In this document: piece by piece, positions 1,967 through 54,314 of the stretch
Position numbering within the stretch: position 1 is the stretch's first letter
How the letters are laid out: each line of letters opens with the position of its first letter
Position numbers and translations under genes: made by a program
DNA from: Mytilus californianus
Lineage: Eukaryota
DNA: 64,000 nucleotides
Direction: 5' to 3'
Assembly (NCBI RefSeq): GCF_021869535.1
Contig: NW_026262745.1
Coordinates: forward strand, 23,002,001-23,066,000
Notes under the pieces: generated by a model
The model's database searches: none
What the model saw: the letters and a program-made list of their open reading frames with translations, nothing else
Told to the model about the DNA's origin: nothing

Positions 1967-2794
1967 TATCCTTACAATTTTGATTTGTATGACCCGTGGT
2001 AAACTCATATCATGAGACCGGCACCCTGTTGATACATCCTGTTTCTTTGTTTGGAATTTATGCAAATCCCTCGGTAAGTATTTTTTTGTTTGTTTATATA
2101 TTCATAACGGATTAACGAGTTTTGAACATCTGTAAGCTACTGTTGTCTCTTATTATGTTTGACATTAAACAAGCAACAATCAATCAATTAATCCCTTATG
2201 ATGGACCATGTAGTTCGAAATACAATATGCACCTCAATTCCGCTTTGGTCCATATGATATTTGGAACATGACCACCTGATTCATTAGCTGCCTCATGACC
2301 CTCAGTGACCATGAATAATTTTTTAAATTTTATTTCATAATCAACCTTGATTGAAATCAAATGTCAAAATATTTGTGTACCTACATAGAGGCTGATGAGC
2401 AATAACAAAGTTACGGACATTTATGATTGTCCGGTTAAAGACAAAACTTCTTGGTATGTCAAAAGAAAAAAAACCCGGGAAATTAGATGCCAAGGGAGCA
2501 ATAAAAAACCTAAAATCGGATGAAAACAGACCACACCATGGCCAGAAAAGAACTCACTGAAAGAAAAGTCCACAAAACCCTACACGTCAAAACTAAATAG
2601 TCGGCAACACGATCACCATTAAAAACTATGAGTTTATTTTTTTTGTTTTATCAAGAATTTAAACATATCTGTACATCATACAACATTACTGAAGTTATAT
2701 TTGCCATACTTAAGTCTTTATCGTAATACACATAAAAAATTTAGTAACATATAACATTCAAAATAACTTCCAAAATTTCCATTTACAACTTGCT

Positions 2795-5700
2795 TTAGCG
2801 AAAATAAATTTCTGGGGTCGTTTCAGTGCACACTAATCCAGTTCCCCAAATTTCTGTAATGTCAAGTCCAAAACGGTTCATTAATTTGGTTATGAAATTC
2901 GATTTTGTTTCCTGTCGATAAAAACAACGAATAATGACCTTTCCAGAAATCTCATGGGAAATCAATTCCCGCAGATGTAAATATAGATGTTCAGCTAAAG
3001 TTTCCCCAATACATCCATAAACCTCTATATTGCATACCAGTCCTGCTGTAGTATTGAAATAATTGCCAAATGTTAAAATTCTGGTACCATTTTCCAAATT
3101 AGAACCGATAACTGTTGTTCGTATTGTTTTGATAAGAAAAGCGTTCGATTTTATCAGTCGATAGGGAACCCAGTCAACAATGACCCGGCTTTCTGGAAAG
3201 AGATGACAGGAGACTTGTTGATTGGTTAGTATATCACCAAGTTCGATTGCATCGATTGGTTTAGCGGAAGAAGGTGTAGTGTTTCCAATAGTGTTAAGTA
3301 TACTTTTCAGTTGATCTCCTGAGGTAATATAAGATCTGAATTCCTGAAATAAAAGATAAGAGATAAAATTGCAGAAAGTGGCTACGTTCGAATTCATTGC
3401 AACATTTCACATGCCTTAAACGGGGAGACGTATAATACAGAATCTTCTCAAAAGTTGACATTGGAAAGTTCAAGATGCAACGCTTGACAATATTATGTCA
3501 AAAATAGGTTACTCTGTTCAGAAATTAAAAACACTTTACCCTTATTCACATCAATGTTCAAAGAATACTTCCTGAATTAAGGGTGCATCATAGCTGCTAA
3601 ATTCGAATTCATTCCCACCGAATTGACTCAAACTCTTAATTTGATTTATGAATTATTAAAATAATTACCATGATAACAAGACTTCCATTGGAAACAATAA
3701 GCAATGCATGACATCGTAATCAAAAATCAGCATTTCGTGCTTATTTAAAACTAGACGCCATCTAATTAAACGTAGAGATGACCCCCAAAGACTACCGATG
3801 ATCATGTGACCGTTATAAATATAAGTATAACTATAGACAGACAAGCACGTGCAAAAGTAATATTAGAAAAACTCCTTAGATGTCTATCTAATTACTTAAA
3901 TTGATCAGCTACAGAGTACATACCTTCTAAAAATGAAGGGAAAAGATATGTTCTGGTGTAGTCAGATACGTTACAAGTACAAAAGACGTGAAAAAGAAAA
4001 AAAGATTAAGAATTATATGGCAAAAATGTATTAACAAAAATACCGAACTCCGAGGTAAATTAAAAAAGGGGAAGTTCATTAAATCTGAAAAAAACCAAAC
4101 GCTCAACTATATCAACCATAATCATTAATCACCATTAAAAGCTTCAATAAGTGGTTTTGTTTTCAGTAAATTAAAATCATACTAAATAGTTTTGTTATAC
4201 ACATAAACACTTAAACGGTACTACAACCTGTCGATACCTTTATTTTGGCATTGCACAAGGTCATGTTTTCTCTGACTGTTAATGACGTCTTTACACTAAA
4301 TCCATTGGATGTGTACTGATTGATATTTTAGTCTTAGATACATGATTTTTTCATTAGTTGTTATTGGCTTTGAAGTAGCTGTCAGTAACTGCGAGTACTC
4401 TCAGATCTGTACTTAGTGTCCTTTTTGTTGTTAGGGATGAGGGATGGATAAATACCCTGCCACGTCCGGTTTGTGTTTATGTTTGATAATTTTCAGCTTT
4501 GTACCGATCTGATGAGTTGAGCCTTTTTCAACTGATTTTTATAGTTTGTTCTTATGTTGTGCTGTTACACCACTGTCCCAGGTTAGGGAGTGGATTGAGC
4601 GCTCACAAACATGTTTAACCCCGCCACATTATTTATGTGCCTGTCCCAAGTCAGGAGTCTGTAGTTCAGTGGTTGTCGTTGATTCATGTCTGTCATATTT
4701 GTTTTTCGTAAATTGTTTTGTTATAAATTAGGCCGTTAGTTTTCTGTTTTGAATTGTTTCATATTTTTCATTTCGGGGCCTTTTATTGCCGACTATACAG
4801 TATGGGTTTTTCTCATTGTTGAAGGCCGTATGGTTGCCTATAATTGCTTTATTTGAACTGTGGAAGATAGTTGTTTCATTGGCAATCATACCACATCTCC
4901 TTATTTGTATATCATACATCAGACATCAGAGCTTTCTCTTCAGTGAAAGCAATAACGAGAACCTTCAAGACTTGTGCTAGAAATACAAATTAGTGTTACA
5001 ACCTTTATAAAAATAAAAGGCGAGATAAGCCTGAGTAAAATAAAAACGAAAACAAGTATTATCCATGGTTGATTCGTACTTTTGACTATAGTACACCTAT
5101 AAAGAGGTATAGACCTACAAAATGTAGGTTAGGTAATAGCCATTTGATTTTTGAAGTCGGGATTTTCAGGCAGACCATTTTAACTTGTTGCTAGGACGGC
5201 TTTATAATTAATTTCTAGGGCGACCCCCCCCCCTCCCCTTTTTCACATTTATTTTGCAGCATTTTGTTGGTCATAGTATTAATTTCATCCTTTCTTGGGC
5301 CACAAGATTACTTCTGTTAGTCTTAATAATTGTGTCAACCATTTTCATCAACATACTCTAGCTTCTAAACAATTTTAATTCTGGATGACATGAATGCTTA
5401 AAAAGAGACTGGCAAATATAAACGCATTTCTGATTTAAAGTTATAACATTTACAATAAACCAGGTCTACCCTCTGAAATAGCTTTCCAAATTACAGGTCT
5501 TTAGTTAGTACAGAGATACAAAATGTAGCGAGAACACTGTTGGCCAAATAACTCTGGAAATTGAAATCTGTGTGTTCAGAAAGTTGTTTTGATTACCAGG
5601 CCACCATTTGTTAAATATATCAAGAAATAAATATAATATTTAAATTTGTTATGCTTATACCATCATTAGAATTTTCTCTCTTTTTCCCGACTTAATTTGA

Positions 5701-7065
5701 TCTAATATTGCTTTAACGTGTGCTCCACTAGTTGCTGCCATTTTATCATATTTTCTGTCTTTTATTGTATTTCTCCTCATAACATCTTGTAATCCCATTC
5801 CTGCATACTCTTTGTTTGTCCTACCTGCTCTAGTTACCACAGTTCTCCCGTTATCAACTACAAAACTTAAGAAAAAACTAGCCTAAAAATAGAAAAATAA
5901 GTGATAATAACTTTGACGGGGCCCGATTAGGTGGTGTTGCATCTAACAAAGTCTATTCAAATTATTTTTGCAAAGAATTCCGCTCAAGCCGGTGCTAGGG
6001 GCGGTCTTAAACTTGCAGTGAGGTGAGAGTTAATTTGCTCCGTGTTGTAGGCCTCACTGTTACTTTGAGATGAAGAACATCAATAAAAGCGCTGTTTCTT
6101 TGCTTTTTGTGTGTTTTTTACTGTGCATGTATTGATTTTGTGTCATGGATGGATACCCCATATTCTTTGTTTTTCTATAATAATAACTTGTATGTTACCA
6201 AAACGTTGACTAAAATGTCTTCGAAATCAGGAAATCAGGAACACAGAGTATGAATAGAACCATCTTAATTTTGCAGTAAAACGAATATGAATGCATCAAT
6301 TTTCTTAAGTATGGTATATTGAGTTCTAAAATTGTTTTAAAAAAATCCATCACAATTATCACCTATCGATAAACATAAACAAAAGTTACATTGGTTAGGA
6401 CAAAACCATATATTATTATATATAAAGTCCACGACTGGACATGACAGACATGGGTTTAATATCTGTCCATGATTGTGAAATTATAAGGCATTTAAAACTG
6501 GCTTTCTGTGTATTAAACATTTTAGCGACAAAAATATCTTTCAGTGTTCTGTGTAAGTTATGGCAACTTAATGACTCCGTTTATTAAATTTCTTTATATG
6601 GAAAACAGATTCAATATTTGGTTTGATGTAAGCTGCCGCTGAAGAGTTATTGTGATCACCAGTGCAGAATACTTTTATACATACTCGTAAAGTTGAATAT
6701 AGGTTTCTTAGTTCAGTACGTATATGTCTTTTTTTAAGTATATTATTCATACTTGAATTTTTCTAACTTATTTGTAAATTCCATCGACATCTGATGTAAA
6801 AATTGTCTACTATCCGGATAGAAATGCATAAGCAAACCATTTTTTTCCAACTTCGCTTTACTGCATATATTAAAAAAAACCTACTTACAAATTTACCATC
6901 AACAACAGCAGCATAGGCTTCGACATTTGACATATCAAGTAACATGTGAAAGTAATCAGGAAGATAGTCGGTTCCACTGTAGATTTGACCCGGTGGAGTT
7001 ATGGCGCAAACTTGATCATAATCATCCTTTGTTACCCTGACAACTTTTATATTCCGGTTACTCAT
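2795..7065 (-). CDS. NAT16 / histidine N-acetyltransferase-like GNAT protein, 3 coding exons, 315 aa
   Basis: Coding exons 7065-6889, 5882-5661 and 3343-2795 (TAA). All junctions are GT-AG and phase 0 (TTT|gtaagt, ttttag|GCT, ATG|gtataa, tttcag|GAA). The protein MSNRNIKVVRVTKDDYDQVCAI..YSGTDYLPDYFH..VVDGKF/ASFFLSFVVDNGRTVVTRAGRTNKEYAGMG..FPESRVIVDWVPY matches the DYLP and VVDxGxT..R...GxG pattern I recall for NAT16-like GNATs. A likely 5'UTR exon donor (ACG|gtaagg) lies at ~7813. Confidence 0.75.
4235..4915 (-). repeat. Long copy of interspersed repeat family A (in intron 2 of the NAT gene)
   Basis: Closely collinear with 35440-36125 (ttggcattgcacaaggtcatg...actgcgagtactctcagatctgtacttagtgtc...ggcaatcataccacatc). 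Confidence 0.8.
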
Positions 7066-8039
7066 TTCCACATTGGATGACAATGAAATCTGAAAAAAAA
7101 GCAATATTAGCCAAAAGAAGATTAGGGATAGTTTATAACATATCATATAATCTAGTTTTATTATGTATTATCACTGAAGTACAAGAGGAAAGTGTTCATC
7201 ACACTGTTACAATGCTACTTTTGTCGAAGGATCAGTGTTTTGTTATGCTTAACTATATTGTACTTTAGTTCCAATCTGCTTAAGAATGAGGCAGTGGTGA
7301 AAACATACAAAAACACAATCAAGTTTACATTAATCTATGTTCAAAATGTATAATGGTGCACGAATATAATATTCGTTTCCTTTTCCTGTTCTTGTATTTC
7401 AAGATATATTTTGGTTGAAATGCAATAGAAATTAACAATTAAGGGGAGCTAACTCAATGATTTACTATCATTCTAACCTAAAGTTATCTTTAGATATTTC
7501 TCGAATTATTAGAGGGTAACTTCAAAATAGGATGGTTAGGACATTAGGTTTTTTTTTCGGCGATGTTTTGAAATTATTCTAAATTGTCTGATTCTTACAA
7601 AGACTTGCACTTAAGAGATGCGAACTTTGAACAACACTACGTAAATAAAATATCACAGTATTGCGAAACTATGACATAGTTGTGGAAAATAAGTACACAC
7701 AGACACATAGTTTCATGCATGTGATCAAATAATTGCATCGTGTGATTATGTTCCGTAACGGTATTTGAGGGATGTTATCAAAAGTAAAAAAATAAATTTG
7801 TGTATACCCTTACCGTCTTAAAAATACACACAGGTAATCGTTATGTCTACACTCATAAATCCATGTCAGTGAATACATGTACATATATTTATTCAAGTTA
7901 TTGGTCACATGATAAAGTAACGGTAAAGTGATTGTTTTTATAAACACGTGTTTGTGTTTATATTAAGCACATGTTTTGTGCTTATGTCTGAAGATTGGAT
8001 GGCATATACCAGCAATGCGGCTTTTACGTGCAGCTGATG

Positions 8040-34959: not shown

Positions 34960-35215
34960 CTCTTCTAAATGCAAAATGTACTACTTCTTTCTTGAAACGT
35001 CGTACAAGTCAGATACAAAACAAAGGTAACAAAAAACAGGCCGTAAACAAACTGCCGTATAGTTTTTCTGCACTTGTAGTCAGGTCAAGGGCCTCGGCTA
35101 TCTCCTCGGTCCTTGACCTGACTACTCGTGCAGAAAAACTATCCGGCAACGCTTGTTACCGGCCTGTTTCTTTGTTACCTTTGTATTGTATCTAATACGT
35201 ATCTAATGAACATCT
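34960..35215. mobile_element. Palindromic hairpin MITE-like element, copy 2
   Basis: tttttctgcacttgtagtcaggtcaagg..ccttgacctgactactcgtgcagaaaaa. Reverse-orientation relative of 8040-8290, including the flanking aaacgtcgtacaagtcaga. Confidence 0.7.
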
Positions 35216-35439
35216 ATATATACACAGAAGATTTAAACATCTTATTTTAACTTTTAAACAGGTAAGATTACTTCCGTACATTTTGAACTCACTTTTAATA
35301 TTTGTCCTAAATAATGACATATTTACATTTCCCTGCGCTGTACAAACTGGTACATTGAAATGGGAATTTGTATAATAAAATGGCAAAAGTTAAATATATT
35401 TTATTACTTTAAATCGCCCATAGTAATGACTATACCTAT

Positions 35440-43490: not shown

Positions 43491-44109
43491 AATTAAGCCA
43501 CTGTACATAATGTGAATATGTTTAACATTAAGCTACAACTAATGTTATTTTAAATTGTAATTGAACTGTGGCAAATATTTTTATCTTATAACAAAATTTT
43601 CGACATCCATTTGCATGTACATAGCGCCACAGTTCCGGGATATTACACACTCCGGCACCGGAGTCTTTCCCGTACCAGGAAGAAGAAGTACATGCTTAAC
43701 AAATTTCTGCAGTTTTCAACTTTGTTTAGTTTTCAAGACTGATATGATTTGGAATAAATGACGATTTAACAAAATTATTTATGGTAACGTTATAAACAAA
43801 ATTATTTATGGTAACCTTATAATCAAATTTAACTCATATCACACTCTATGTTGTGCTAAATATTTAGTCTTGCTTGGTCTTCTATCCGTTAACGGGAATT
43901 ACAGGTTTACGAAGAAAACATTATGACGGCCGGTACGATCACTATCGTTGTGCAATATGTACTAAACTTTATAAAAATAAAAAATATAGATAATAAAGAA
44001 ATATAAAAATCTCAGATTTAATTATAACAAGCTACGGGTATATAACTCGAAGTCGTTAGTTTTGCTTTGTTACGGTGGGACAAATCAGCGTCATAAAATG
44101 GGCGCTTTA

Positions 44110-44366
44110 CCGGAGAACCAGTGAGTAGCGCAAAGCTAACAAAACCTGCGTTTCAGGAGTAAGTGCATGGGACCTATTTGTATCATGTTTTATATCTGGT
44201 TCTATTGCCAATGTGATTTCATTGATACTGTGTCTATCCAGTCTGTATCTGGATATAATATCCTTTTCATTTTCAAAATGATCAAACGAAGAAAGTGTGG
44301 TTCTAATATTGAAGATTCTTCTTCGTCTTCTAACATTTGCGGCATCTTGATCGAGAATAAAGCCAT
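44110..44366 (-). pseudogene. Harbinger transposase N-terminal/HTH relic
   Basis: Reads RRRRRIFNIR..FDHFENEKELY, then after a frameshift SRYRLDRHSINEITLAIEPDIKHDTNRSHALTPETQVLLALRY, the HARBI1-type HTH pattern. Confidence 0.75.
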
Positions 44367-44756
44367 CTTAGATATGGTTTAATTCATATTTGCGGAAATA
44401 TACGACTGGGTATAGCTGTAGTAAGTTACGCCAGGATTTACGTATTATTTACGCTCATCTTAACTTACGACGGCTTTGTGAAACGGCTGTAAAACCTACG
44501 ATTTATTTACGATGAACGTACGATGACACGTAAGACTTACGAAGGCTTTGTGAAACGGTACCCAGGCTGCTATACATATATATTTTTAACACGATCAACC
44601 GATGGGGTGAAAATTCAATAATCATCTTACATTGCTTGTTATAAATTCAAACCCAGTAACTTTAATTCAAAGTTTATAAGTTTGATTTAATCGCTAATAA
44701 TCAAATTGCATTGCTTGAGTTCTGCTTTAGGTCTTTTATTCTATTGTAGAACCATT

Positions 44757-47700
44757 ATGTTACTAGTCTTACTGGCACTGGTTTTTGGTGTTAATTGCAT
44801 TCTTGGATACACGGAAAATGAACGGAAACAGTTTTTGATGGCGGGATTGTCTGATATTCAACGAGAAACAATTGACGGAACAGTAACAGTTGAGAGTGGA
44901 ACCATCCCAACATGGTTAAATGGTAGAAAAGCTTTCACACAACATTATCAAATATCTAGAATTTTACAATAAGCATGCTGACCATTTCCCTGAAATTAAT
45001 GGCATACTTAATTTGCATAAGGCATACTTCCATGTGATAGTTTAGAAAACAAAATGAATATATTCACTTGGAATGTAAAGAAAATAACGAAAAAACTATT
45101 TTATGCAATTTCTTCGAAATAATGACACTTAGACTTATAATGTCGATGAAGAAAAAACCTTCCTAAACACAGTTTTATTTCTGATAAAATTTTCTGACGT
45201 GAAAAAAGCAGCATCTAGTTAATTCTTAGTAGATAGGTCCATAATTTATTTTAAAACTGCAGTTTGACAAAAATGCAATGCAATGGTGACGCCTAGATCT
45301 CTATTTTTGATTGACTTCTAATTCTACTGTTGAGTTTCTATCTCTATGAAGTTTACCTATTTTAAAGCACATAGTCGATATTATAAAGCATAATTCTTAT
45401 GAGAAACATGAAATTATTTAGACACCCCTCCCCCCTTTCCAAAAAAATAAGATAAATATTGCGCTACAATGTAACATTCAAGCTTTTAAAATATTAGCAG
45501 AAAGTATGTCATGTATATAATTATTAAGTGGTGTATTATTATTATCTGATGTATTTTTTTTCTTTCAAAAAGGTAATTTTATGCGACATTCCTGTGGTGT
45601 CTTTGGTGAAACTGATCATTTGGATAGCAACGAACCCAACTATATCAGCCATCTTTTCGATTGCATTGAAATTGGTTCAAAGTTCAAATTAGAAAATGGA
45701 CAAGTGACGTTTACAAATAGGTATGAAATATAATCATTCAGTATCTAAACCAAACTTTACCTCTACTTTTTCTTGATTGAACACACGATAAAAAAGACAT
45801 ACAAGATACATTTTGTTTTTGTAAAAAACAGGCAATCAAAGCTCTTTATTTAAAGGAGAACCGCCAAGATCATCACAAAAGAACGAATACGAACAAGAAA
45901 AACAGTTAACAAAGCAAAACGCAGAAAACTAAAGTTTGAGCAACTGGAACCTGTATGCATTTCCTGCTCCATATGTGACAACCGTCGTAAACAAAATGTC
46001 GAAAAATCAAAGTAAACATACGCTACTACTTTCATTTTTACTAGGCTAGTTTTTTTACAGTGTAAAATTAAAATTGAAAAGAATTTTATACCTGCAAAAA
46101 GTTTTGTCACGAAAGCCTTACTTATAAGCAGGATCTTCCTCTTGGATCGTGCTACAAACGATACTATTTGATTTTAACGAAAGAAATCTCTGTATTACTG
46201 AAAAATTATATATTACACTAGGGTTTTCGATAACACAAACTTGTCAAAACATTTACTAAATTTTATCATCGGTACAAAGACATCATTCGTAAATATAAAT
46301 CAACGTGCAGACATCTTATACGTTCAGGTATTTCACATCCCATCTTTTATGGTAATATTCTATACAAAGCACAAAAATGTCGTCATTCACCTCAAAGGCT
46401 AACCAAACCTTTAAACAGACTTATTCTGAAGGGATATAGCTACGATACTGTTGTCAGGTCATTAAAGATGGCATTTTTTGGAATTAATATTGATTCACTC
46501 ATAGGGTCTTTGCATCGGAAATAAAACACATATATTCTAAAACCAGTTGTTGGCATGAAACGGGTTATGTTCTTCTCGTATATTTTATGATGGTATGGTA
46601 CTAAACCTCTAACGGGAGGGATTATGCTTGATTTTCATATGATGAATCAGTTTAATTGAGGTCTGGAGCTGGAATGTCAGTAACTGCTAATAGTCCTTTG
46701 TTAATTCATGTTGATCATTGTCATTTTGCTTAGTTTCTTCTGTTACAAGGACTTCTTTTAAACTGAGTTTTACTGTGCGTATTGCTGTGTGTTTGTTTAT
46801 TCTACATTGGCTAGATGTATAGGTGGAGGGTTGAGATCTCACAAAACATGTTTAACCCCGCCTCATTTTTGCGCATGTCCCTTTGTTAGTCTTGCATATT
46901 TTTTCTAAATTTTTGGTTCATTTATATGTTTCGGAGTTTAGTGTGACGTCCATTTTCTCTGAACCAGTATATATTTTTGTTTAGGGGCCAGTTAAAGCCC
47001 GCCTCCGGATGCGGGAATTTCTTGCTGTGTAGGAGACCCATTGGTGGCCTTGAGCTGGTTTCTGCTCTTTGGTCAAGTTGTTGTCTCTTTAGCACATTCC
47101 CCGTTTCCATTTTCAAGTTTATTTTCATACTACTGGATTTATTTTATAACATGATGGTGAACTGAACAACGTTCACTCAAGTTATCTATCCTATTTGTTG
47201 ATTAACACTAATACTCCAGTTACGAGAATAAAAAAATGAATGAGAATTTTATTTTTGTATATTCTCACGTATTCTCAAATGAAACGAATTATACAAAAAG
47301 CTTTAAAAAGCTTTTAAGGTACACAAATATCAATTTGACCCAAATGCTATAAAAAAGTTTAGGAGGAATGTCTGACAAGCACCAGAGCCACATGACAAAT
47401 TGTAAATCGACCTTAGTCATCTGGAATCAACATTAAAATTTCGACAACATACAAGAAAGAAAAATTATATAAGAGCAAAATCCATTGACCAGATTGCCAT
47501 AGAAACAATTGGTGGGGTTAAAAAGCTTAAAAAAATCAATCTATTATAATTAACAATTATCTTGTCCCCAATTGTTTCATAATTTTTGAGATTGCATCTC
47601 CCGGTCTGATTATATTCGACTTCTAATGTATCTATAATCTGTGGTGACAAACAAAAACTTTCGTATAGGAGAAAACAAGCAAATAAAATAATAATAATAA

Positions 47701-50700
47701 TAAAAAAATACAGAATAATGAAAAAAATAAATAATTTAATACTGCAGTGAAAACCATAAATTCAATCTATCCAAACAATCAAAATGTGACAACAAAATAT
47801 AACATGGATACAAGGTATCTCTTTAAAATGGGAAAATAGAGATGCATGATCGAGTGGATGTAGATAATGTTAGTTACAGCAAGTTTAAAGGAATTTTGCA
47901 TTTATGCTCTAAAATTCAAAACTTGTCTTTTACATAGATGGTATGACACCCAGTCAAACGAATTTTTCAATCGTTATGGGAGGAACATGAACAAGTCTAG
48001 TGTTTTTATGGCCGGAACGTACAGCAAGGCAGTAAGTTTCATTTTTTAAGACTCGAAAGACCGGTCTTCGCATACACTATGAAGAAATATTCATCTAGAT
48101 GTAACCAACTGATTGGGCAAATTTACAGTATTTCTACAAAATAAGCAGATGCATATAACGAATCATCTAGCACAGGAATATTTATCCAAAATAAACCTCC
48201 ATATCTGAAGTAAGAGTTATTTGTGCAAAATTTTATTAAGCGTATTAAATATAAAAGTGAAAGAGACGACTTGAAAACATAAGGACTCGTCAGTCTATGT
48301 ATAAAATCTTAAGAAACATTGACAGCATTCATATAATCAAAATTTAATACACAATCAATCGTAGAAATAGATTTCTGATACATCAAAATATAAAAAAACC
48401 CAACTTTTTTATAGAACCTGTCACAAGTACAGAATTTTAAACAATTTGGAAAGCAGTCAAACAAAATTGTTGAAGTTCCACATGTCAGTTGGTGGCAGAT
48501 CGGTAACCAAGCCATTGCTATGACAGAAATGCCTGTAGGTGTAGTGATTAACCCAGTAAAGGTAGAGCATAATGGTTATATAAGTTACCTAGACAATAAC
48601 TTTGGCTATGGCAAAAGTATCCAATTAACTAACAACCCGGCACATGAGCACACTGAAGCAGACGGTACATTGTGGAGCACAGTCACAGCTGTCAGATTTA
48701 CATCACAGACTAACCTGAATATTTGGTAAGTGTCGCTTATACTCGAAAGTGTCATATAGTAGCGACAGTTCAACTAACAGGGTGTTAGTAATGGCCACAA
48801 GTTGATTTCATCTGTCCGTAAATTGATTCGTCTTTTCTGTGTAACCTGAAGTATTATTGAAATTTCTTGATTGGATGAACCCTATGTACTTATGTTAAGT
48901 TGGGTCAAGGTTACTCAATTCTAACCATCTCTTAAGACAGATCATTAGCATTGCTCTTTATATGTCGAACATTGAACTGTTTGTTATTAATGACAACTGA
49001 CCGATTAAAAGAAAAATAAAACGCACCATTTAATAAAAGACTTCAAAGAGAGGTAAAGATCATATGAACTTATATGTACAAAAAAAAAAGTTTTTACTAA
49101 TGATTTTTGACCTATTTGGCCATTTTTACGAGTAAATGACAACCCTATTTAATAAAAAAAAACAAACTATTTTACTTTGAAATTCAGTCAATATGGTATT
49201 AACCATAATATTGTAAGGCTTAATTTAACTAGAACCAATGCATTCATTTTTTTTAATGAAGAACATACAATATATATAGTGGGTTTATTTATTCAACCCA
49301 CAAGTAAAATTACCTAATCGTTAAAACTGATATTAGATTTAAAATAAGTCACTTATCAGAGGTAAATGACATAACAGAGGGATTATGTTTCCTGAATATA
49401 TATTATTGGATCGTGACCGCAGTCTTAACCGCCATCATTGGACATCTTATTCAAATATGATACATTTATAATTTAACGGGTTCACTGTTGAATATCCAAG
49501 TTTATGTTTAAATACTAAAGCATGGTAGATTATTATACAAAACTGATGCACGTTGTCTATATGCTAGATAAATTCAGAAACATGTACATGAGGGTCTGGA
49601 TTGAGGTGGGTCGTCATTCCTGTATCAATTGATTTTTTAGGCCATTTTTCTTTTCTTTAATTTTTTGGTCCATTATTCTCCATTCTTTATTCTTTGCCAA
49701 ATTTCTGTATTTTATTGTTGCCCTTTATTCTGTACCTTTGGTCCATTATTCTCTATTCTTAAAACCGCATGCACGCCCTCGTACATATTTGCGGTTATTT
49801 GTGACATAAGAAAATGAGCTTAAATCTTATGCAAGAAGGTACTGCCTAATGCAACAAAATATCATCGGACGAAGTATGAAAATAAATAGATTGTTATACG
49901 TATTTTGGATAGACACAAAATGTTATCATAAAACGTTCATGCATTGCCTTTATATGTTTTTGTCGTAATTTTGAACAATTTTAACGTGCTGAATCGTTAA
50001 CAATGATAAACCTTCATTGACAATATATGTTTAGGCAAAGATTTCACAATTACAAACACGTTTTATGTTATAGGCGAATTATTTACAAAGTTGGTGCTGA
50101 TAGGATCAGACACAAAGTTGGAGAATACCATTATAACGATGCAGATTTAACAAAGTGCTCTAGAACAAAGCCATTCAACACTTACCCAGATTTAAGTTCA
50201 AGATTTGGCTATTTACACTCGTTTAGCTCGACAGAAAAATATATAATTCTCCCTGAGACGGCCTATATGCATGATCCTTGTTTTTACGGTAAGGTAACAT
50301 TTATGTAGAAAATTAAGAATACATTTACCTTGACTTAGATGATTTATACATATGAAGGATAAATCTTTATGTGTTAATTGTGTGCTCGATTCAAATAGTT
50401 GAATGATTAAATGAATTCCGAAGTTGAAGAGCACTGACACCAACAATTTAAAACATTGTGCCAAATATGGCTAAAGCAACCAATGCCTAGGGATAGAAAA
50501 CCGTAGTTTTTTTTTAACGATTTAAAAATTTTATGAACGGTAAGCTTCAGGGATAAATATGTTACATTATGTTAATGCTATTTTGTCTTGTTTTCATGTG
50601 TGCATTTTTATGTTAGTTAATGGCTCCAATAATTAATAATCACGAAGCCACAGATTGTATTCTGCAAATTCTGCTTATTAATGTTAATAAAAAAAATGTT

Positions 50701-53700
50701 TTTAAAGTGTCATATATTGATATTGCAATAAGAAAATTACAAGCACAATATACATACATAATAAAACAACCAGTATCACAAAAACATCTGACTTGCGAGA
50801 CACTATGTATCATTGTATACAAATGACAAGAAATCTACATGTTTCATCTTGAAATTAAGTGTTTTTAACAAAGTTATCACGCAAAGTTTATAAGAATCTT
50901 ATTTATGTTTATAGCTCATTACCAGAATGGGGAACCATTCTTTCCTCAGGGGTTCAAATTTGAACAAAAAGGTATGTCACGGTTAGTAGTGATGAGGAAG
51001 TCGGACGGTAAAATAATCGCCAGTATTAAAGCAAAACCTTTCTTCGTAACTCATCAGGTGAGCTATCTGAATAAAACCTCAATAGTTTTACATTGTCTTT
51101 TTCAATGTTTAGTTGATATTGTCATCCAATTGATTCACTCTTTTAAAGGGGCATAAGCTACGAGATATAAAAAATCTTTAATGAAAGTGAATTAGTTTTA
51201 CAGCCAGTTTAGTTCAATATTGTCAAAATAAGCTACGAAACATCGGTGATGAATTATTCACTTGCAAGTGAATAATTCGACATCATTGAATCCGTATTAA
51301 TGTGACCTTCAATTTAACCCATTAGCTAGAGATTGGTCCCGCATGTATTAGTCGTGATCAGCCATTAAAAGGAAAAGAATGTCAACATTGAAAGTGAAAC
51401 AAAGATGAACCATTTCGTTGACTGACTCGATCAACAAAATTACATGTATATTTTGTTTAAAGTAGGAAACAGAACATATAATGGGACAGCAACCCAACGT
51501 CACAAATAATCAAAATATATTATGTCCTCAATCAAACATTGAAATCGATAACAATAATTAGCGACATGGTTTGGAAACAATTGTGTTTTAGATTTTCTGT
51601 ATGACTAGTGGAAACAGACAAAACCGTTGTGCGAGGTCACAGAAATTTGTTTAATGTATATGTCATTTTGATTTTTAGCTTGGATCGTATGAAGATGGTG
51701 AATTGATACATATGGATATGTTAATGTATGATGACGCCTCTATATATGACAGGACGACATATATTACTAGTCTTATGGCTAATGTAAGTTTTATATACCA
51801 ACGGTCTGTTCCTAATATAAAATAACTACGCGACAGTTTATAGATGAAAATTATTTGAATTCAAGAATTGAAAAAAGTGTTCCATTGAAATCCATTATTA
51901 TCGTTACTCGGTCAGTTACTTTATTATAATAAGTACCGGTACGTAATCGGATTTGTTCTGTTCAGGGAATTCCCATTATACTTTTTGTGTTTTACATAAA
52001 TTTGAAATTTTGAAAAATTGAAATATTATGTTAGAGATTTGAATCAATATATATCATGACAGACCTGTTCCTTTTAACCATTATATTCTATTGTAGACTC
52101 CATACACTACTAATGTAACAAGAATAACTATTAATACAACTGACTGGACAGCAATGTTTAAGAATCTCCGTAGTGGTTCTCCTGCTGCCTTTGAAATGTC
52201 AAACATCAACTATGCATACAATGGTAGGAAATATACGTATGCTTATATGAGTAGGAATTTCGACAGAGCGGACATAAATGCTGTGACTAAGGTACTTTTC
52301 ATAATTTCTTCAAACTTCTTTCTGCAACGCTACTATATTCCAAGAGATTGTTTGCTCTAATCATCAAAATATTATTAATTAAGTTCGTACTTTGCTAGCT
52401 TTTTTGGAAGTTTTTCTCTTGATGGACAAGAAAGATTTGACTAATAATTAAAATGTAAAATCTACAAAAAAAAAATGTACCTCTTGAACGTCAATTTAAG
52501 AATATGATGTCCAGTATTTGATATGTCTCTTTATACATGTATGAGATTTAAAACAATGCAACACGTGTTCATTAGACTGCTGCTTTTTTTCGATTTTTAG
52601 TTCAAAACAGTCAGGAACCTGTTGTTCAGTGGTTGTCGTTTGTTGATGTAGTTCTTAAGTGTTTCTCGTTTCTCGTTTTTTATATAGATTAGACCGTTGG
52701 TTTTCCTGTTTGAATTGTTTTAAACTAGTCATTTGGGGCCCTTTGTAGTTTGCTGTTCGGTGTGAGCCAAGGCTCCGTGTTTGACCTATGATTTTTTACT
52801 TTTTACACATTGTGACTTGGATGGAGAGTTGTCTCATTGGAACTCATACCACATCTTCTTATTTCTATGTCGAATAGATTTTGTATTAGTGATGCCTTTT
52901 ATATGTTTTACCTTTTAATCTTATACAGTTAAATGTGGATACTGGTGTTGAAACGGAATATGTTTTCCCGGAGGGAATGTTTGTTCAAGAACCTCAATTT
53001 GTGTCCCGACCTAATTCAACAGCAGAAGATGATGGCGTTTTACTAGCACAAGGGGTCGATGGAACAAAACATAAAGGTAAACTGTAATCAAGTGCTGTGT
53101 CAACGGGGAACTTTTTATGCGGAAAATTAATTCCTCTTTTTGAATAAGATTTTGTTTTTCAGTCGTCATCTATTTGAGCAGGAGTTTTGTAAATTATCTA
53201 TTTCATGTGGGTTTTGTTTCATTGTGGATGTGTCTTTTTTTCTTTACAAAATAAAATATAACCCTTTTTTCTTAAAATGCGAAGACTGTGTGGTTAATTT
53301 TGACACTTCTGATGCTGCTACAATTCTATTAGAATTGAAAAAAAAGTTTAAAAGCTTTAAAGGGATTTAGATTTCAAGGTTTCTTTAATTGTTTTTTAAT
53401 CATTTTATTACAAACGTCATTTTAGTCTGATTAATTCAGAGGAAGGCTAATCAAAAGAAATATCATTCAAAGACATTGTTTGGTCATATAAACAACAGGC
53501 AAAAGATATGATTATATGAGTTAATGGTAAAAGACTCTTGACCAGCATACATTTTATAGGAACAGTTATAACCTCTTAATATACATCAATATTATGCTCA
53601 TAAATCCGTATTTATTTCAATTCCTTTAGATGAATGAACTAAAACCTCTTGATTTAACTTGATTTAAATTTGTAGACAAATACATTATCTAGAAAATAGC

Positions 53701-54314
53701 ATTGCTGCATGATCATTTGAAGAATGACATTTGGATTTTTTACAGCATTCCTCTGTGTAATTGATGCCAAGACAATGAAGTTGATATCTCACGTAACAGC
53801 ACCAGATATAGCTTTATTGGGATTACATAATAGGTATATATACATTATAATTTAATTCTATAATGGAAGTGTTTAGCTTCAATCCATTTCAATTTTCTAA
53901 TTCGTTCCCTAAATTGATTGTCATTTTCTAGGAAGAAAAACGATTTTATTGTAAATTAACCTTTTTTTTCACTAATCGCTCAAATACTTTATTCCATCTA
54001 ATGCTCTGAAAGTCACAAAATTTCAATAATATATTACAACATCTAAAATGCTGAATTACATTTCTTTCCTACATACATTATTTGTCATAACTTAAAAGTT
54101 TGATCATTTGCTCTTATGGTTTGTATTTACCCCCATGGTTATTTAATCGTCTAATCTTTTTTTAACGAATGTGATATTTAGAAGGGATAAGGTGAAAATT
54201 TATACTAGCATTTATCATGTTTATAACTATCAAATATATATTTTTTACAGATTTTTTGGTCTGGAGGTTGGAAACTCTTCTGTTGGTTCAGCGGAAATAA
54301 TAGGAAAAAGATAA
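44757..54314 (+). CDS. Carotenoid cleavage oxygenase (RPE65/BCO family) with predicted signal peptide, 11 coding exons, 558 aa
   Basis: Coding exons 44757-44922, 45573-45720, 47938-48031, 48415-48725, 50074-50288, 50915-51057, 51679-51783, 52097-52291, 52929-53076, 53746-53833 and 54251-54314 (TAA). Total 1677 nt, all GT-AG, phase-consistent, no internal stop. Family motifs: GTIPTWLNG, HLFD, AMTE, PAHEH, YLHSF, FVTHQ, FEMSNIN, GRKYTYAY, QEPQFV, AEDDGVLL, IDAKTM and GLHNRF. Confidence 0.93.
46150..46520 (+). mobile_element. Penelope-like element RT C-terminal fragment (intron 2 of the oxygenase gene)
   Basis: Reads ERNLCITEKL..GFR*HKLVKTFTKFYHRYKDIIRKY..GISHPIFYGNILYKAQK..LNRLILKGYSYD, followed by family-A-like flanking sequence to ~47125. 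Confidence 0.6.
52610..52866 (-). repeat. Interspersed repeat family A copy (intron 8)
   Basis: Reverse complement of the 18770 copy. Confidence 0.85.

Follow-up and report, generated by a model that had tools for sequence, protein, structure and literature searches.

Does the mussel Mytilus californianus send a carotenoid oxygenase out of its cells? The question arises from a stretch of 64,000 nucleotides (nt) of its genome (RefSeq assembly GCF_021869535.1, contig NW_026262745.1, positions 23,002,001 to 23,066,000; hereafter the window), in which a gene on the + strand at 44757-54314 encodes a carotenoid cleavage oxygenase (CCO) that begins with a short hydrophobic leader. Our preferred answer is that the gene produces an exported, soluble, iron-dependent CCO, made as a pre-protein with a cleavable signal peptide; to this explanation, taken as a whole, we assign a probability of about 0.72. 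Entry of the mussel oxygenase into the secretory pathway, which the original prediction had proposed, is supported by several independent lines of sequence evidence: a leader found throughout a clade of animal proteins, stop codons just before the leader methionine in cDNAs, loss of the PDPC(K) motif, conserved sequons and cysteine pairs, and paralogues whose C-terminal tails resemble glycosylphosphatidylinositol (GPI) attachment signals.

Structure of the gene and its product

We built the gene model from splice sites and homologue-guided tblastn searches, the stop-free segments of the + strand between 44.7 and 54.3 kb matching the Pfam RPE65 profile collinearly. Single exons used as queries gave weak or no matches in Pfam and the PDB, and the first full-length relative came from one exon searched against representative sequences. 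The resulting gene has 11 coding exons at 44757-54314, every intron is of the GT-AG type, and the open reading frame (ORF) of 1,677 nt encodes 558 amino acids (aa) plus a stop codon; the window holds no runs of N. The product is letter for letter the same as P0111, which is XP_052076841.1, annotated as "carotenoid isomerooxygenase-like [Mytilus californianus]" and encoded on contig JAKFGE010000009.1 of assembly GCA_021869535.1. The intact 558-aa protein of the original prediction was thus recovered in full, both from its 11 exons and in the public annotation.

A leader conserved across a clade of animal proteins

The protein starts with MLLVLLALVFGVNCILG|YTENE, a short hydrophobic core followed by a small-residue site, just as had been claimed. 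The predicted signal peptide comprises residues 1 to 17 (MLLVLLALVFGVNCILG, 44757-44807, + strand), with the predicted cut before Y18. This leader is the sole strongly hydrophobic 19-residue stretch in the protein, with a Kyte-Doolittle (KD) score of 2.24 against 1.10 for the next best stretch. It lies outside the Pfam domain (residues 37-540), and its KD-9 maximum, 3.56 at residue 2, compares with values of no more than 1.8 in canonical metazoan enzymes. At the other end, the mussel protein stops at ...EIIGKR, and we found in it no C-terminal hydrophobic tail, second hydrophobic segment, transmembrane segment, KDEL or HDEL, or recognisable lysosomal sorting signal. The earlier statement that neither a C-terminal transmembrane segment nor KDEL is present is therefore correct.

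We compared this N terminus with those of about 20 bivalve relatives (Mytilus, Mercenaria, Ruditapes, Dreissena, Mactra, Mya, and transcript contigs), together with Capitella, four Ptychodera and two Glandiceps proteins, a Saccoglossus fragment, and several marine sequences, two of them nematode-like. A hydrophobic N terminus with a small-residue site was present in 19/20 bivalve proteins (the exception being a truncated model), two of the three Capitella proteins, all five hemichordate proteins, and most of the further marine sequences. Mouse BCO1, fly NinaB, an RPE65-like protein, and BCO2-like proteins lack a leader-type N terminus. The concern that orthologues might be without the leader is thus answered by its presence across the clade and its absence from canonical enzymes. 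In paralogues, the putative cleavage sites AHA|YT, VAG|YT, THA|YT, and AHA|FS are of the AxA type and directly precede the residue aligned with Y18.

The leader methionine and expression of the gene

An upstream in-frame start that masks the hydrophobic segment had been named as a threat to the secretory interpretation, so the 5' end of the gene matters. Coding exon 1 (44750-44922, + strand) follows a strong acceptor, ttattctattgtag|AACCATTATG, whose boundary lies 7 nt short of the ATG at 44757. Its coding part runs from the leader into the mature protein, as far as ...IPTWLN and the first base of G56. Two congener cDNA contigs (L002 and L003), whose protein is about 95% identical, cover all 11 coding exons and a 60-nt leader exon at 35202-35261 on the + strand. 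They match this leader exon at 92% identity and then jump to 44748/44750, and the canonical donor (CAG|gtaaga at 35261/35262) and acceptor (before 44750) are present in the window. The segment at 35202-35261, whose 5' end is provisional, is probably a non-coding leader exon (5' untranslated region).

An in-frame TAA stands six codons before the ATG, both in the congener cDNAs and in the leader exon plus exon 1 of the window itself. It ends an upstream ORF within the leader exon (35206-35253, ATG at 35206, 15 codons) that is in the same frame as the main ORF. In the unspliced case, an in-frame TAA at 44688-44690 still precedes the ATG, with no ATG between them; the same ATG is first in frame whether exon 1 is spliced to the leader exon or transcribed unspliced. 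The same arrangement, an in-frame stop ahead of the hydrophobic methionine, recurs in five further cDNA contigs (L004 to L008) that represent four additional bivalve-clade genes. In all seven contigs, which represent five related genes, the leader methionine is the first ATG after an in-frame stop located 5 to 14 codons upstream, and no masking start was seen among them. A start exon with its own promoter, for which a TATAAA at about 44642 was the candidate, was rejected, as the congener cDNAs instead reach exon 1 via acceptor 44750 from the leader exon 9.5 kb upstream.

We aligned M. californianus RNA reads to positions 43500-49499 (6,000 letters), a span that the 9.5-kb leader intron exceeds. 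A 615-nt contig from run X1 is spliced through exons 2, 3, and 4 at the modelled junctions with 0 mismatches: it joins 45720, the end of exon 2 (45573-45720, + strand), to 47938, the start of exon 3 (47938-48031, + strand), and 48031 to 48415 (GT..AG). The junction between exons 3 and 4 is also present in a contig from run X7. In the stranded raw-read run X17, a few reads fall on exons 1 and 4 in an orientation that fits RNA from the + strand. The RNA-seq check proposed for the start exon therefore confirmed the strand and the splicing of exons 2 to 4, while its evidence for exon 1 itself and for the leader junction was thinner, as weighed below.

Fold and catalytic centre

The match to the PF03055 (RPE65) profile spans residues 37-540 of the protein and positions 6-468 of the 469 in the profile, with an E value of 8.6e-61 and a score of 206.9 bits against a cut-off of 27. 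An AlphaFold model computed with a 42-sequence alignment is a seven-bladed beta-propeller (predicted local distance difference test [pLDDT] score, 93.1; predicted template modelling [pTM] score, 0.90), in which the leader forms a separate helix at a lower pLDDT of 70-75 and residues 549-558 are disordered, with pLDDT below 50. The top Foldseek matches to this model were 6VCF (NdCCD), 8FTY, and RPE65 entries (E values from 4e-36 to 1e-29; template modelling [TM] scores of 0.74-0.88 on target), with NdCCD, NinaB, and RPE65 first.

The four iron-ligand histidines and the glutamates that support them, listed in the original prediction by the motifs AMTE, FEM, and QEP, are all in place. Exon 4 (48415-48725, + strand) encodes E174 (AMTE) and H213 (AHEH), exon 5 (50074-50288, + strand) H288 (YLHSF), exon 6 (50915-51057, + strand) H358 (FVTHQ), and exon 10 (53746-53833, + strand) H536 (GLHNRF). 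After exon 7 (51679-51783, + strand) come E427 (FEM), in exon 8 (52097-52291, + strand), and E480 (QEP), in exon 9 (52929-53076, + strand), which also carries an EDDG motif. The histidines are invariant in the 42 aligned proteins, and all three glutamates are retained, being Glu in nearly all clade members. H213, H288, and H358 align with His180, His241, and His313 of RPE65, and E174, E427, and E480 with Glu148, Glu417, and Glu469; the fourth ligand, H536, aligns with the last histidine of NdCCD (6VCF), the equivalent of RPE65 His527. By profile, by four histidines and three glutamates, and by propeller fold, the mussel protein is a member of the CCO/RPE65 superfamily (PF03055).

Sequons, cysteines, and loss of the PDPC(K) motif

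The 558-aa protein contains six sequons: NKS123 (exon 3), NLS137 (the beginning of exon 4), NVT400 and NTT407 (exon 8), NST488 (exon 9), and NSS546 (exon 11). Three of these are conserved in position among the bivalve sequences, N123 in 21/21, N400 in 19/21, and N407 in 16/21. At all three positions the middle residue of the sequon varies (at N123 it is K, Q, E, D, A, R, or N) while the sequon itself is kept.

The stretch that corresponds to the PDPC(K) motif reads GTYSKANLSQ in the mussel protein versus FGTMAYPDPCKN in mouse BCO1, and the motif is absent from all 34 clade members aligned. The cysteine of PDPC(K) is palmitoylated in RPE65 and BCO2 (PMC7221588). An N-x-S/T sequon (N137 in the mussel protein) occupies the alignment column of this cysteine in mytilids, in some of the further marine sequences, and in one nematode-like sequence.

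Two cysteine pairs follow a similar pattern of conservation. C268, within a clade-specific insert, and C309 (DPCFY), both encoded by exon 5, are present in 34/34 clade members aligned and in none of the outgroup sequences. This clade-only presence suggests a disulfide, and a C268-C309 bond is probable. C63 and C86 (the latter in an HLFDC motif), both encoded by exon 2, occur together in 27/27 bivalve, annelid, and further marine sequences aligned and are mostly both absent from hemichordate and nematode-like sequences; a C63-C86 disulfide is possible.

C-terminal tails

About half of the leader clade ends in a hydrophobic tail of 15-20 residues that follows small residues, in the form of a GPI attachment signal (P0037, P0038, P0041 to P0044, P0046, P0050, P0060, P0062, P0067, P0030, and P0147 to P0151). 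A GPI signal functions only in the lumen of the endoplasmic reticulum (ER), so the paralogue tails independently support secretory routing of the clade. Exon 11 of the window gene (54251-54314, + strand) encodes the C terminus, ...EIIGKR, and the TAA stop, in a tail predicted to be disordered. That the window protein and its closest kin have no hydrophobic tail points to a soluble form for this gene, and the clade would then hold both anchored and soluble forms.

The members without a hydrophobic tail end in -[IVL][IVL]-G or -G-K-R, among them the window protein (...EIIGKR, 54294-54311), P0034, P0036, P0039, P0040, P0045, P0047, and P0048. A C-terminal Gly or Gly-Lys-Arg is the classic dibasic-processing or amidation site of secretory granules. 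It is speculative whether the -GKR or -G end of these proteins is an amidation-type site or instead the remnant of a lost GPI signal.

Phylogenetic placement

We placed the protein in a maximum-likelihood tree of 52 sequences and 550 columns, composed without lancelet or mollusc-type BCO-like (BCOL) sequences. The leader-bearing animal proteins (bivalve, annelid, hemichordate, and nematode-like) form one clade with support of 100/100, on a very long stem (1.64 substitutions per site). The mussel protein falls outside the canonical metazoan enzymes, which group apart with support of 100/99. The phylogeny that had been called for thus sets the leader-bearing proteins apart from BCO1, BCO2, NinaB, and RPE65, and the RefSeq name, which implies a NinaB-like enzyme, appears misleading and is not supported by the tree. 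A small bacterial CCO group, including a Rhabdochlamydiaceae sequence, joins the leader clade as its sister with weak support (84/81), a position that is not robust. Against the PDB, a profile of the clade scored 267 bits with NdCCD, 189 with NinaB, 178 with Caenorhabditis elegans BCMO-2, 173 with RPE65, and 148 with the lancelet enzyme BCOLg (9PLV). These scores, a weak proxy for relationship, point to no special tie between the clade and BCOLg.

Proposed function and alternative explanations

The gene model, fold family, catalytic residues, leader position and conservation, PDPC(K) loss, and clade placement are direct observations. In the explanation that we prefer, a pre-protein of the CCO superfamily would be imported into the ER by its short, cleavable N-terminal signal peptide and cut after Gly17. 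The mature protein of about 541 residues would be a seven-bladed propeller that holds Fe(II) on H213, H288, H358, and H536, with support from E174, E427, and E480. The conserved N123, N400, and N407 would be the probable N-glycosylation sites, with N137 a less certain fourth; N137 sits on the loop where intracellular relatives carry palmitoylated PDPC(K). The probable C268-C309 disulfide, and possibly a second one between C63 and C86, would staple the fold. With no membrane anchor to retain it, the enzyme would be released in soluble form. Outside the cytosol it would carry out the O2-dependent cleavage of a carbon-carbon double bond, its substrate being a carotenoid or apocarotenoid. If lancelet BCOLg is a guide, that substrate would most likely be found among the algal carotenoids of the diet, within the digestive tract.

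Several findings weigh against this explanation. The n-region of the leader has no basic residue. The six N-X-S/T sequons that the original prediction put forward are all present, but their number is at chance level (shuffles of the same composition give a mean of 5.75, a standard deviation of 2.15, and P[>=6] of 0.52). Since composition by itself yields six, the count is not evidence; it is the conservation of sequon position that carries weight. The junction between 35261 and 44750 was observed in congener cDNA only and not directly in M. californianus reads, and reads on exon 1 are very thin in this species, with about one in X17 and none in the contig runs. In two database models from other Mytilus species, P0113 (M. 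edulis isoform X1, 605 aa) and P0116 (M. coruscus CAC5360458, 610 aa), an extra 46-52 residues precede the leader and would leave it internal. The BCOLg structure 9PLV matches the Mytilus orthologue at 47.8 bits (E value, 7e-12), below NdCCD, NinaB, and RPE65, and this low similarity makes the analogy in function and site a loose one. The disulfides and glycans are proposed from conservation, and we infer signal cleavage, glycosylation, disulfides, extracellular destination, substrate, and tissue from the sequence.

Some of these points favor other fates for the protein. Since exon 1 is entered through acceptor 44750, other 5' exons could be used, and one with an upstream in-frame start would leave the leader internal and the protein cytosolic or otherwise targeted. 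The extended M. edulis and M. coruscus models and the thin coverage of exon 1 would fit this, but the extensions find no counterpart in the 64-kb window (best E values, 0.085-0.11) and may be alternative 5' exons or prediction artefacts. The in-frame stop just before the leader methionine in seven cDNA contigs from five related genes, a stop that the leader exon of the window also carries, argues the other way, as does retention of the leader over hundreds of millions of years, which is unexpected for a buried segment; we give this possibility very little credence. It is also highly improbable that the leader is an uncleaved signal anchor, which would make a type II membrane protein with a luminal or extracellular propeller. 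The minimal uncharged n-region and a mussel site of I-L-G rather than A-x-A would suit such an anchor; however, the hydrophobic core of about 11-12 residues (L2-V12) is too short to cross a membrane, the -3/-1 rule is satisfied by Gly17 at -1, paralogues have AxA at the aligned position, and those that need an anchor use a C-terminal GPI-like tail.

A protein that enters the ER need not leave the cell, and the oxygenase might act in the lumen of the ER or Golgi, in lysosomes of digestive cells, or in secretory or pigment granules. The leader and conserved sequons show entry into the pathway only, the conserved C-terminal -GKR or -G resembles motifs processed in secretory granules, and bivalve digestion is largely intracellular and lysosomal. 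Yet the mussel protein has no KDEL/HDEL, transmembrane segment, or recognisable lysosomal signal to hold it back, and BCOLg, the nearest precedent from experiment, passes into the medium (PMC7221588), so that we regard retention as quite unlikely. Somewhat more weight is due, though still as an unlikely outcome, to a secreted enzyme whose natural substrate is not a C40 carotenoid and is instead an apocarotenoid, a stilbenoid or phenylpropenoid, or some other conjugated dietary or environmental alkene. The stem of 1.64 substitutions per site separates the clade from all characterised CCOs, the superfamily includes stilbene and isoeugenol oxygenases that the clade profile also matches, and no member of this branch has been assayed with substrates. 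Against such a substrate stand the large amounts of algal carotenoids that filter-feeding mussels ingest, the best sequence and fold matches, which are the carotenoid or apocarotenoid enzymes NdCCD, NinaB, RPE65, and C. elegans BCMO, and the cleavage of beta-carotene by lancelet BCOLg (PMC13734108).

Other features of the window

Intron 2 contains a repeat at 46100-47100 that reaches a word depth of up to about 12,000 in RNA-derived contig runs. The repeat, in which variant letters and loose ends are numerous, matched no Rfam family; an abundant transposable element or satellite is its probable identity.

Upstream of the oxygenase, minus-strand exons at 2269-3344, 5657-5882, 6870-7090, and 7814-7912 belong to a histidine N-acetyltransferase-like gene (Pfam Hisat_C, 1.8e-22), with intron ends that read CT..AC on the + strand. 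Between the 5' exon of this gene and the oxygenase leader exon there are 33 nt in the congener cDNA contigs and 27 kb in the window. A head-to-head promoter could explain this, as could sequence inserted in M. californianus or chimerism of the contig.

Implications for exported oxygenases in animals

The idea of an exported animal CCO is not new, BCOL having been described in 2017 and secretion (2020) and glycosylation with a crystal structure (2026) having been shown for BCOLg. Because the concept is already published, the mussel gene adds breadth and not a new principle. The background of the original prediction, in which animal members are only cytosolic, mitochondrial, or bound to the ER surface, is accordingly out of date with respect to the BCOL signal peptides predicted in molluscs, annelids, and lancelets (PMC5643517) and, for one member, to secretion (PMC7221588) and to N-glycosylation and a disulfide (PMC13734108). 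Its question of whether a secreted invertebrate clade had already been described can be answered yes, as BCOL (PMC5643517).

The breadth consists in an expanded, uncharacterised branch of leader-bearing CCOs in mussels and clams, some with GPI-like tails. Animals cannot synthesise carotenoids, and filter-feeding bivalves obtain them from algae. If the cleavage enzyme is indeed exported, carotenoid breakdown or the production of retinoids and apocarotenoids could begin outside the cell, as proposed for lancelets. Leader-bearing CCOs are candidates for studies of bivalve tissue and shell coloration, and soluble, glycosylated (as predicted) propellers are possible practical targets for expression and structural work.

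A further reading, toward which we lean somewhat negatively, is that the clade represents a second, ancient bilaterian lineage of secretory-pathway carotenoid oxygenases that is not specially related to BCOLg, so that export has arisen twice in animals or is older than the BCO/RPE65 radiation. The hallmarks of such a lineage may be the retained Glu triad, the insert with the C268-C309 disulfide, a glycan at the site of the palmitoylated cysteine, and soluble versus GPI-anchored paralogues. Such a second lineage, if there were one, might not share the substrate of BCOLg or its site of action; candidate sites are the gut lumen, the cell surface, the haemolymph, and mantle secretions.

Comparison with known carotenoid oxygenases

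The canonical enzymes BCO1, BCO2, NinaB, and RPE65 have the superfamily, the fold, the centre of four histidines and three glutamates, and a length of 500-620 aa in common with the mussel protein. They differ from it in being intracellular, in lacking the leader and the C268 insert, in possessing PDPC(K), and in forming their own clade (100/99). The best match of solved structure is the CCD of Nitrosotalea devanaterra (NdCCD, 6VCF), at 119.9 bits by sequence (267 by profile) and a TM score of 0.88 on target by fold. NdCCD and the bacterial CCOs, which come from prokaryotes, measure 455-500 aa, retain a DPC-type motif, and are without the insert and its cysteine pair.

The functional model for the mussel protein is lancelet BCOLg (XP_002601288.1; PDB 9PLV). 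By sequence the two are alike in an N-terminal signal peptide, which for the mussel protein is a prediction, in the absence of PDPC(K), and in four iron-binding histidines, and for BCOLg the N-glycosylation, disulfide, secretion from HEK293 cells, gut expression, and beta-carotene cleavage are established. A 2020 study that refers to "the secreted BCOL subfamily" found that BCOLg lacks palmitoylation and that HEK293F cells release part of it (PMC7221588). The 2.4 A structure of secreted BCOLg, in a preprint of October 2026, has four N-glycans and a Cys422-Cys449 disulfide, and the same work reports gut expression and 15,15' cleavage of beta-carotene; its authors propose that BCOLg acts on algal carotenoids in the gut lumen (PMC13734108). 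The conserved pair of the mussel clade is instead C268-C309. Of the three second-shell positions in BCOLg, two hold Asp, a substitution of Glu that is called a general BCOL feature (PMC13734108), whereas E174, E427, and E480 are all Glu in the mussel protein, as the equivalent residues are in nearly all clade members. The Asp substitution is a trend of the lancelet-type branch and not a formal definition.

The BCOL assemblage was described by Poliakov et al. in 2017 from lancelets, molluscs, annelids, and nematodes, as proteins that lack PDPC(K) (PMC5643517). Signal peptides predicted with TargetP are tabulated there for proteins of Crassostrea, Aplysia, Octopus, Lottia, Capitella, and lancelets. 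In the accompanying tree, where the BCOL clade has a maximum-likelihood bootstrap of 44%, the lancelet and mollusc cluster has as its sister a branch made up of C. elegans BCOL and Saccoglossus BCOLa. The molluscan BCOLs of that study (Aplysia, Lottia, and Crassostrea) carry other motifs (SSAHPVPEPG and PYMHSFSVT) and belong to another branch, and those printed in its supplement (Aplysia, Lottia, and Mimachlamys) likewise have motifs unlike those of the mussel protein. The branch of C. elegans BCOL and Saccoglossus is absent from the signal-peptide table (Table 1) of PMC5643517 and is without a characterised member. Its bivalve members, GPI-like tails, conserved sequons, and cysteine pairs are not described in the cited BCOL literature, and we found no literature specific to this gene in bivalves or Mytilus.

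It is this sister branch that the mussel protein matches by motif. C. elegans BCOL shares the signature stretches of the clade (YDRNMSKASV versus YGRNMNKSSV, LDFWKVGN versus VSWWQIGN, and FVTHQLNAFE versus FVTHQLGSYE), a match made by eye on motifs and not by alignment, and its sequence in the supplement of PMC5643517 also has the conserved cysteine pair and a hydrophobic N terminus. Its N-terminal motif, GFPEAWDGD...CPSKNIPKWL, is nearly identical in P0152, which falls with the mussel protein inside the clade supported at 100/100. The hemichordate proteins, including the Saccoglossus fragment, group in the mussel clade as well, as do the nematode-like P0151 and P0152, and Saccoglossus BCOLa was matched to them by motif. 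Given the motifs shared with C. elegans BCOL, the mussel protein is, by the naming of PMC5643517, a BCOL of the nematode and hemichordate branch.

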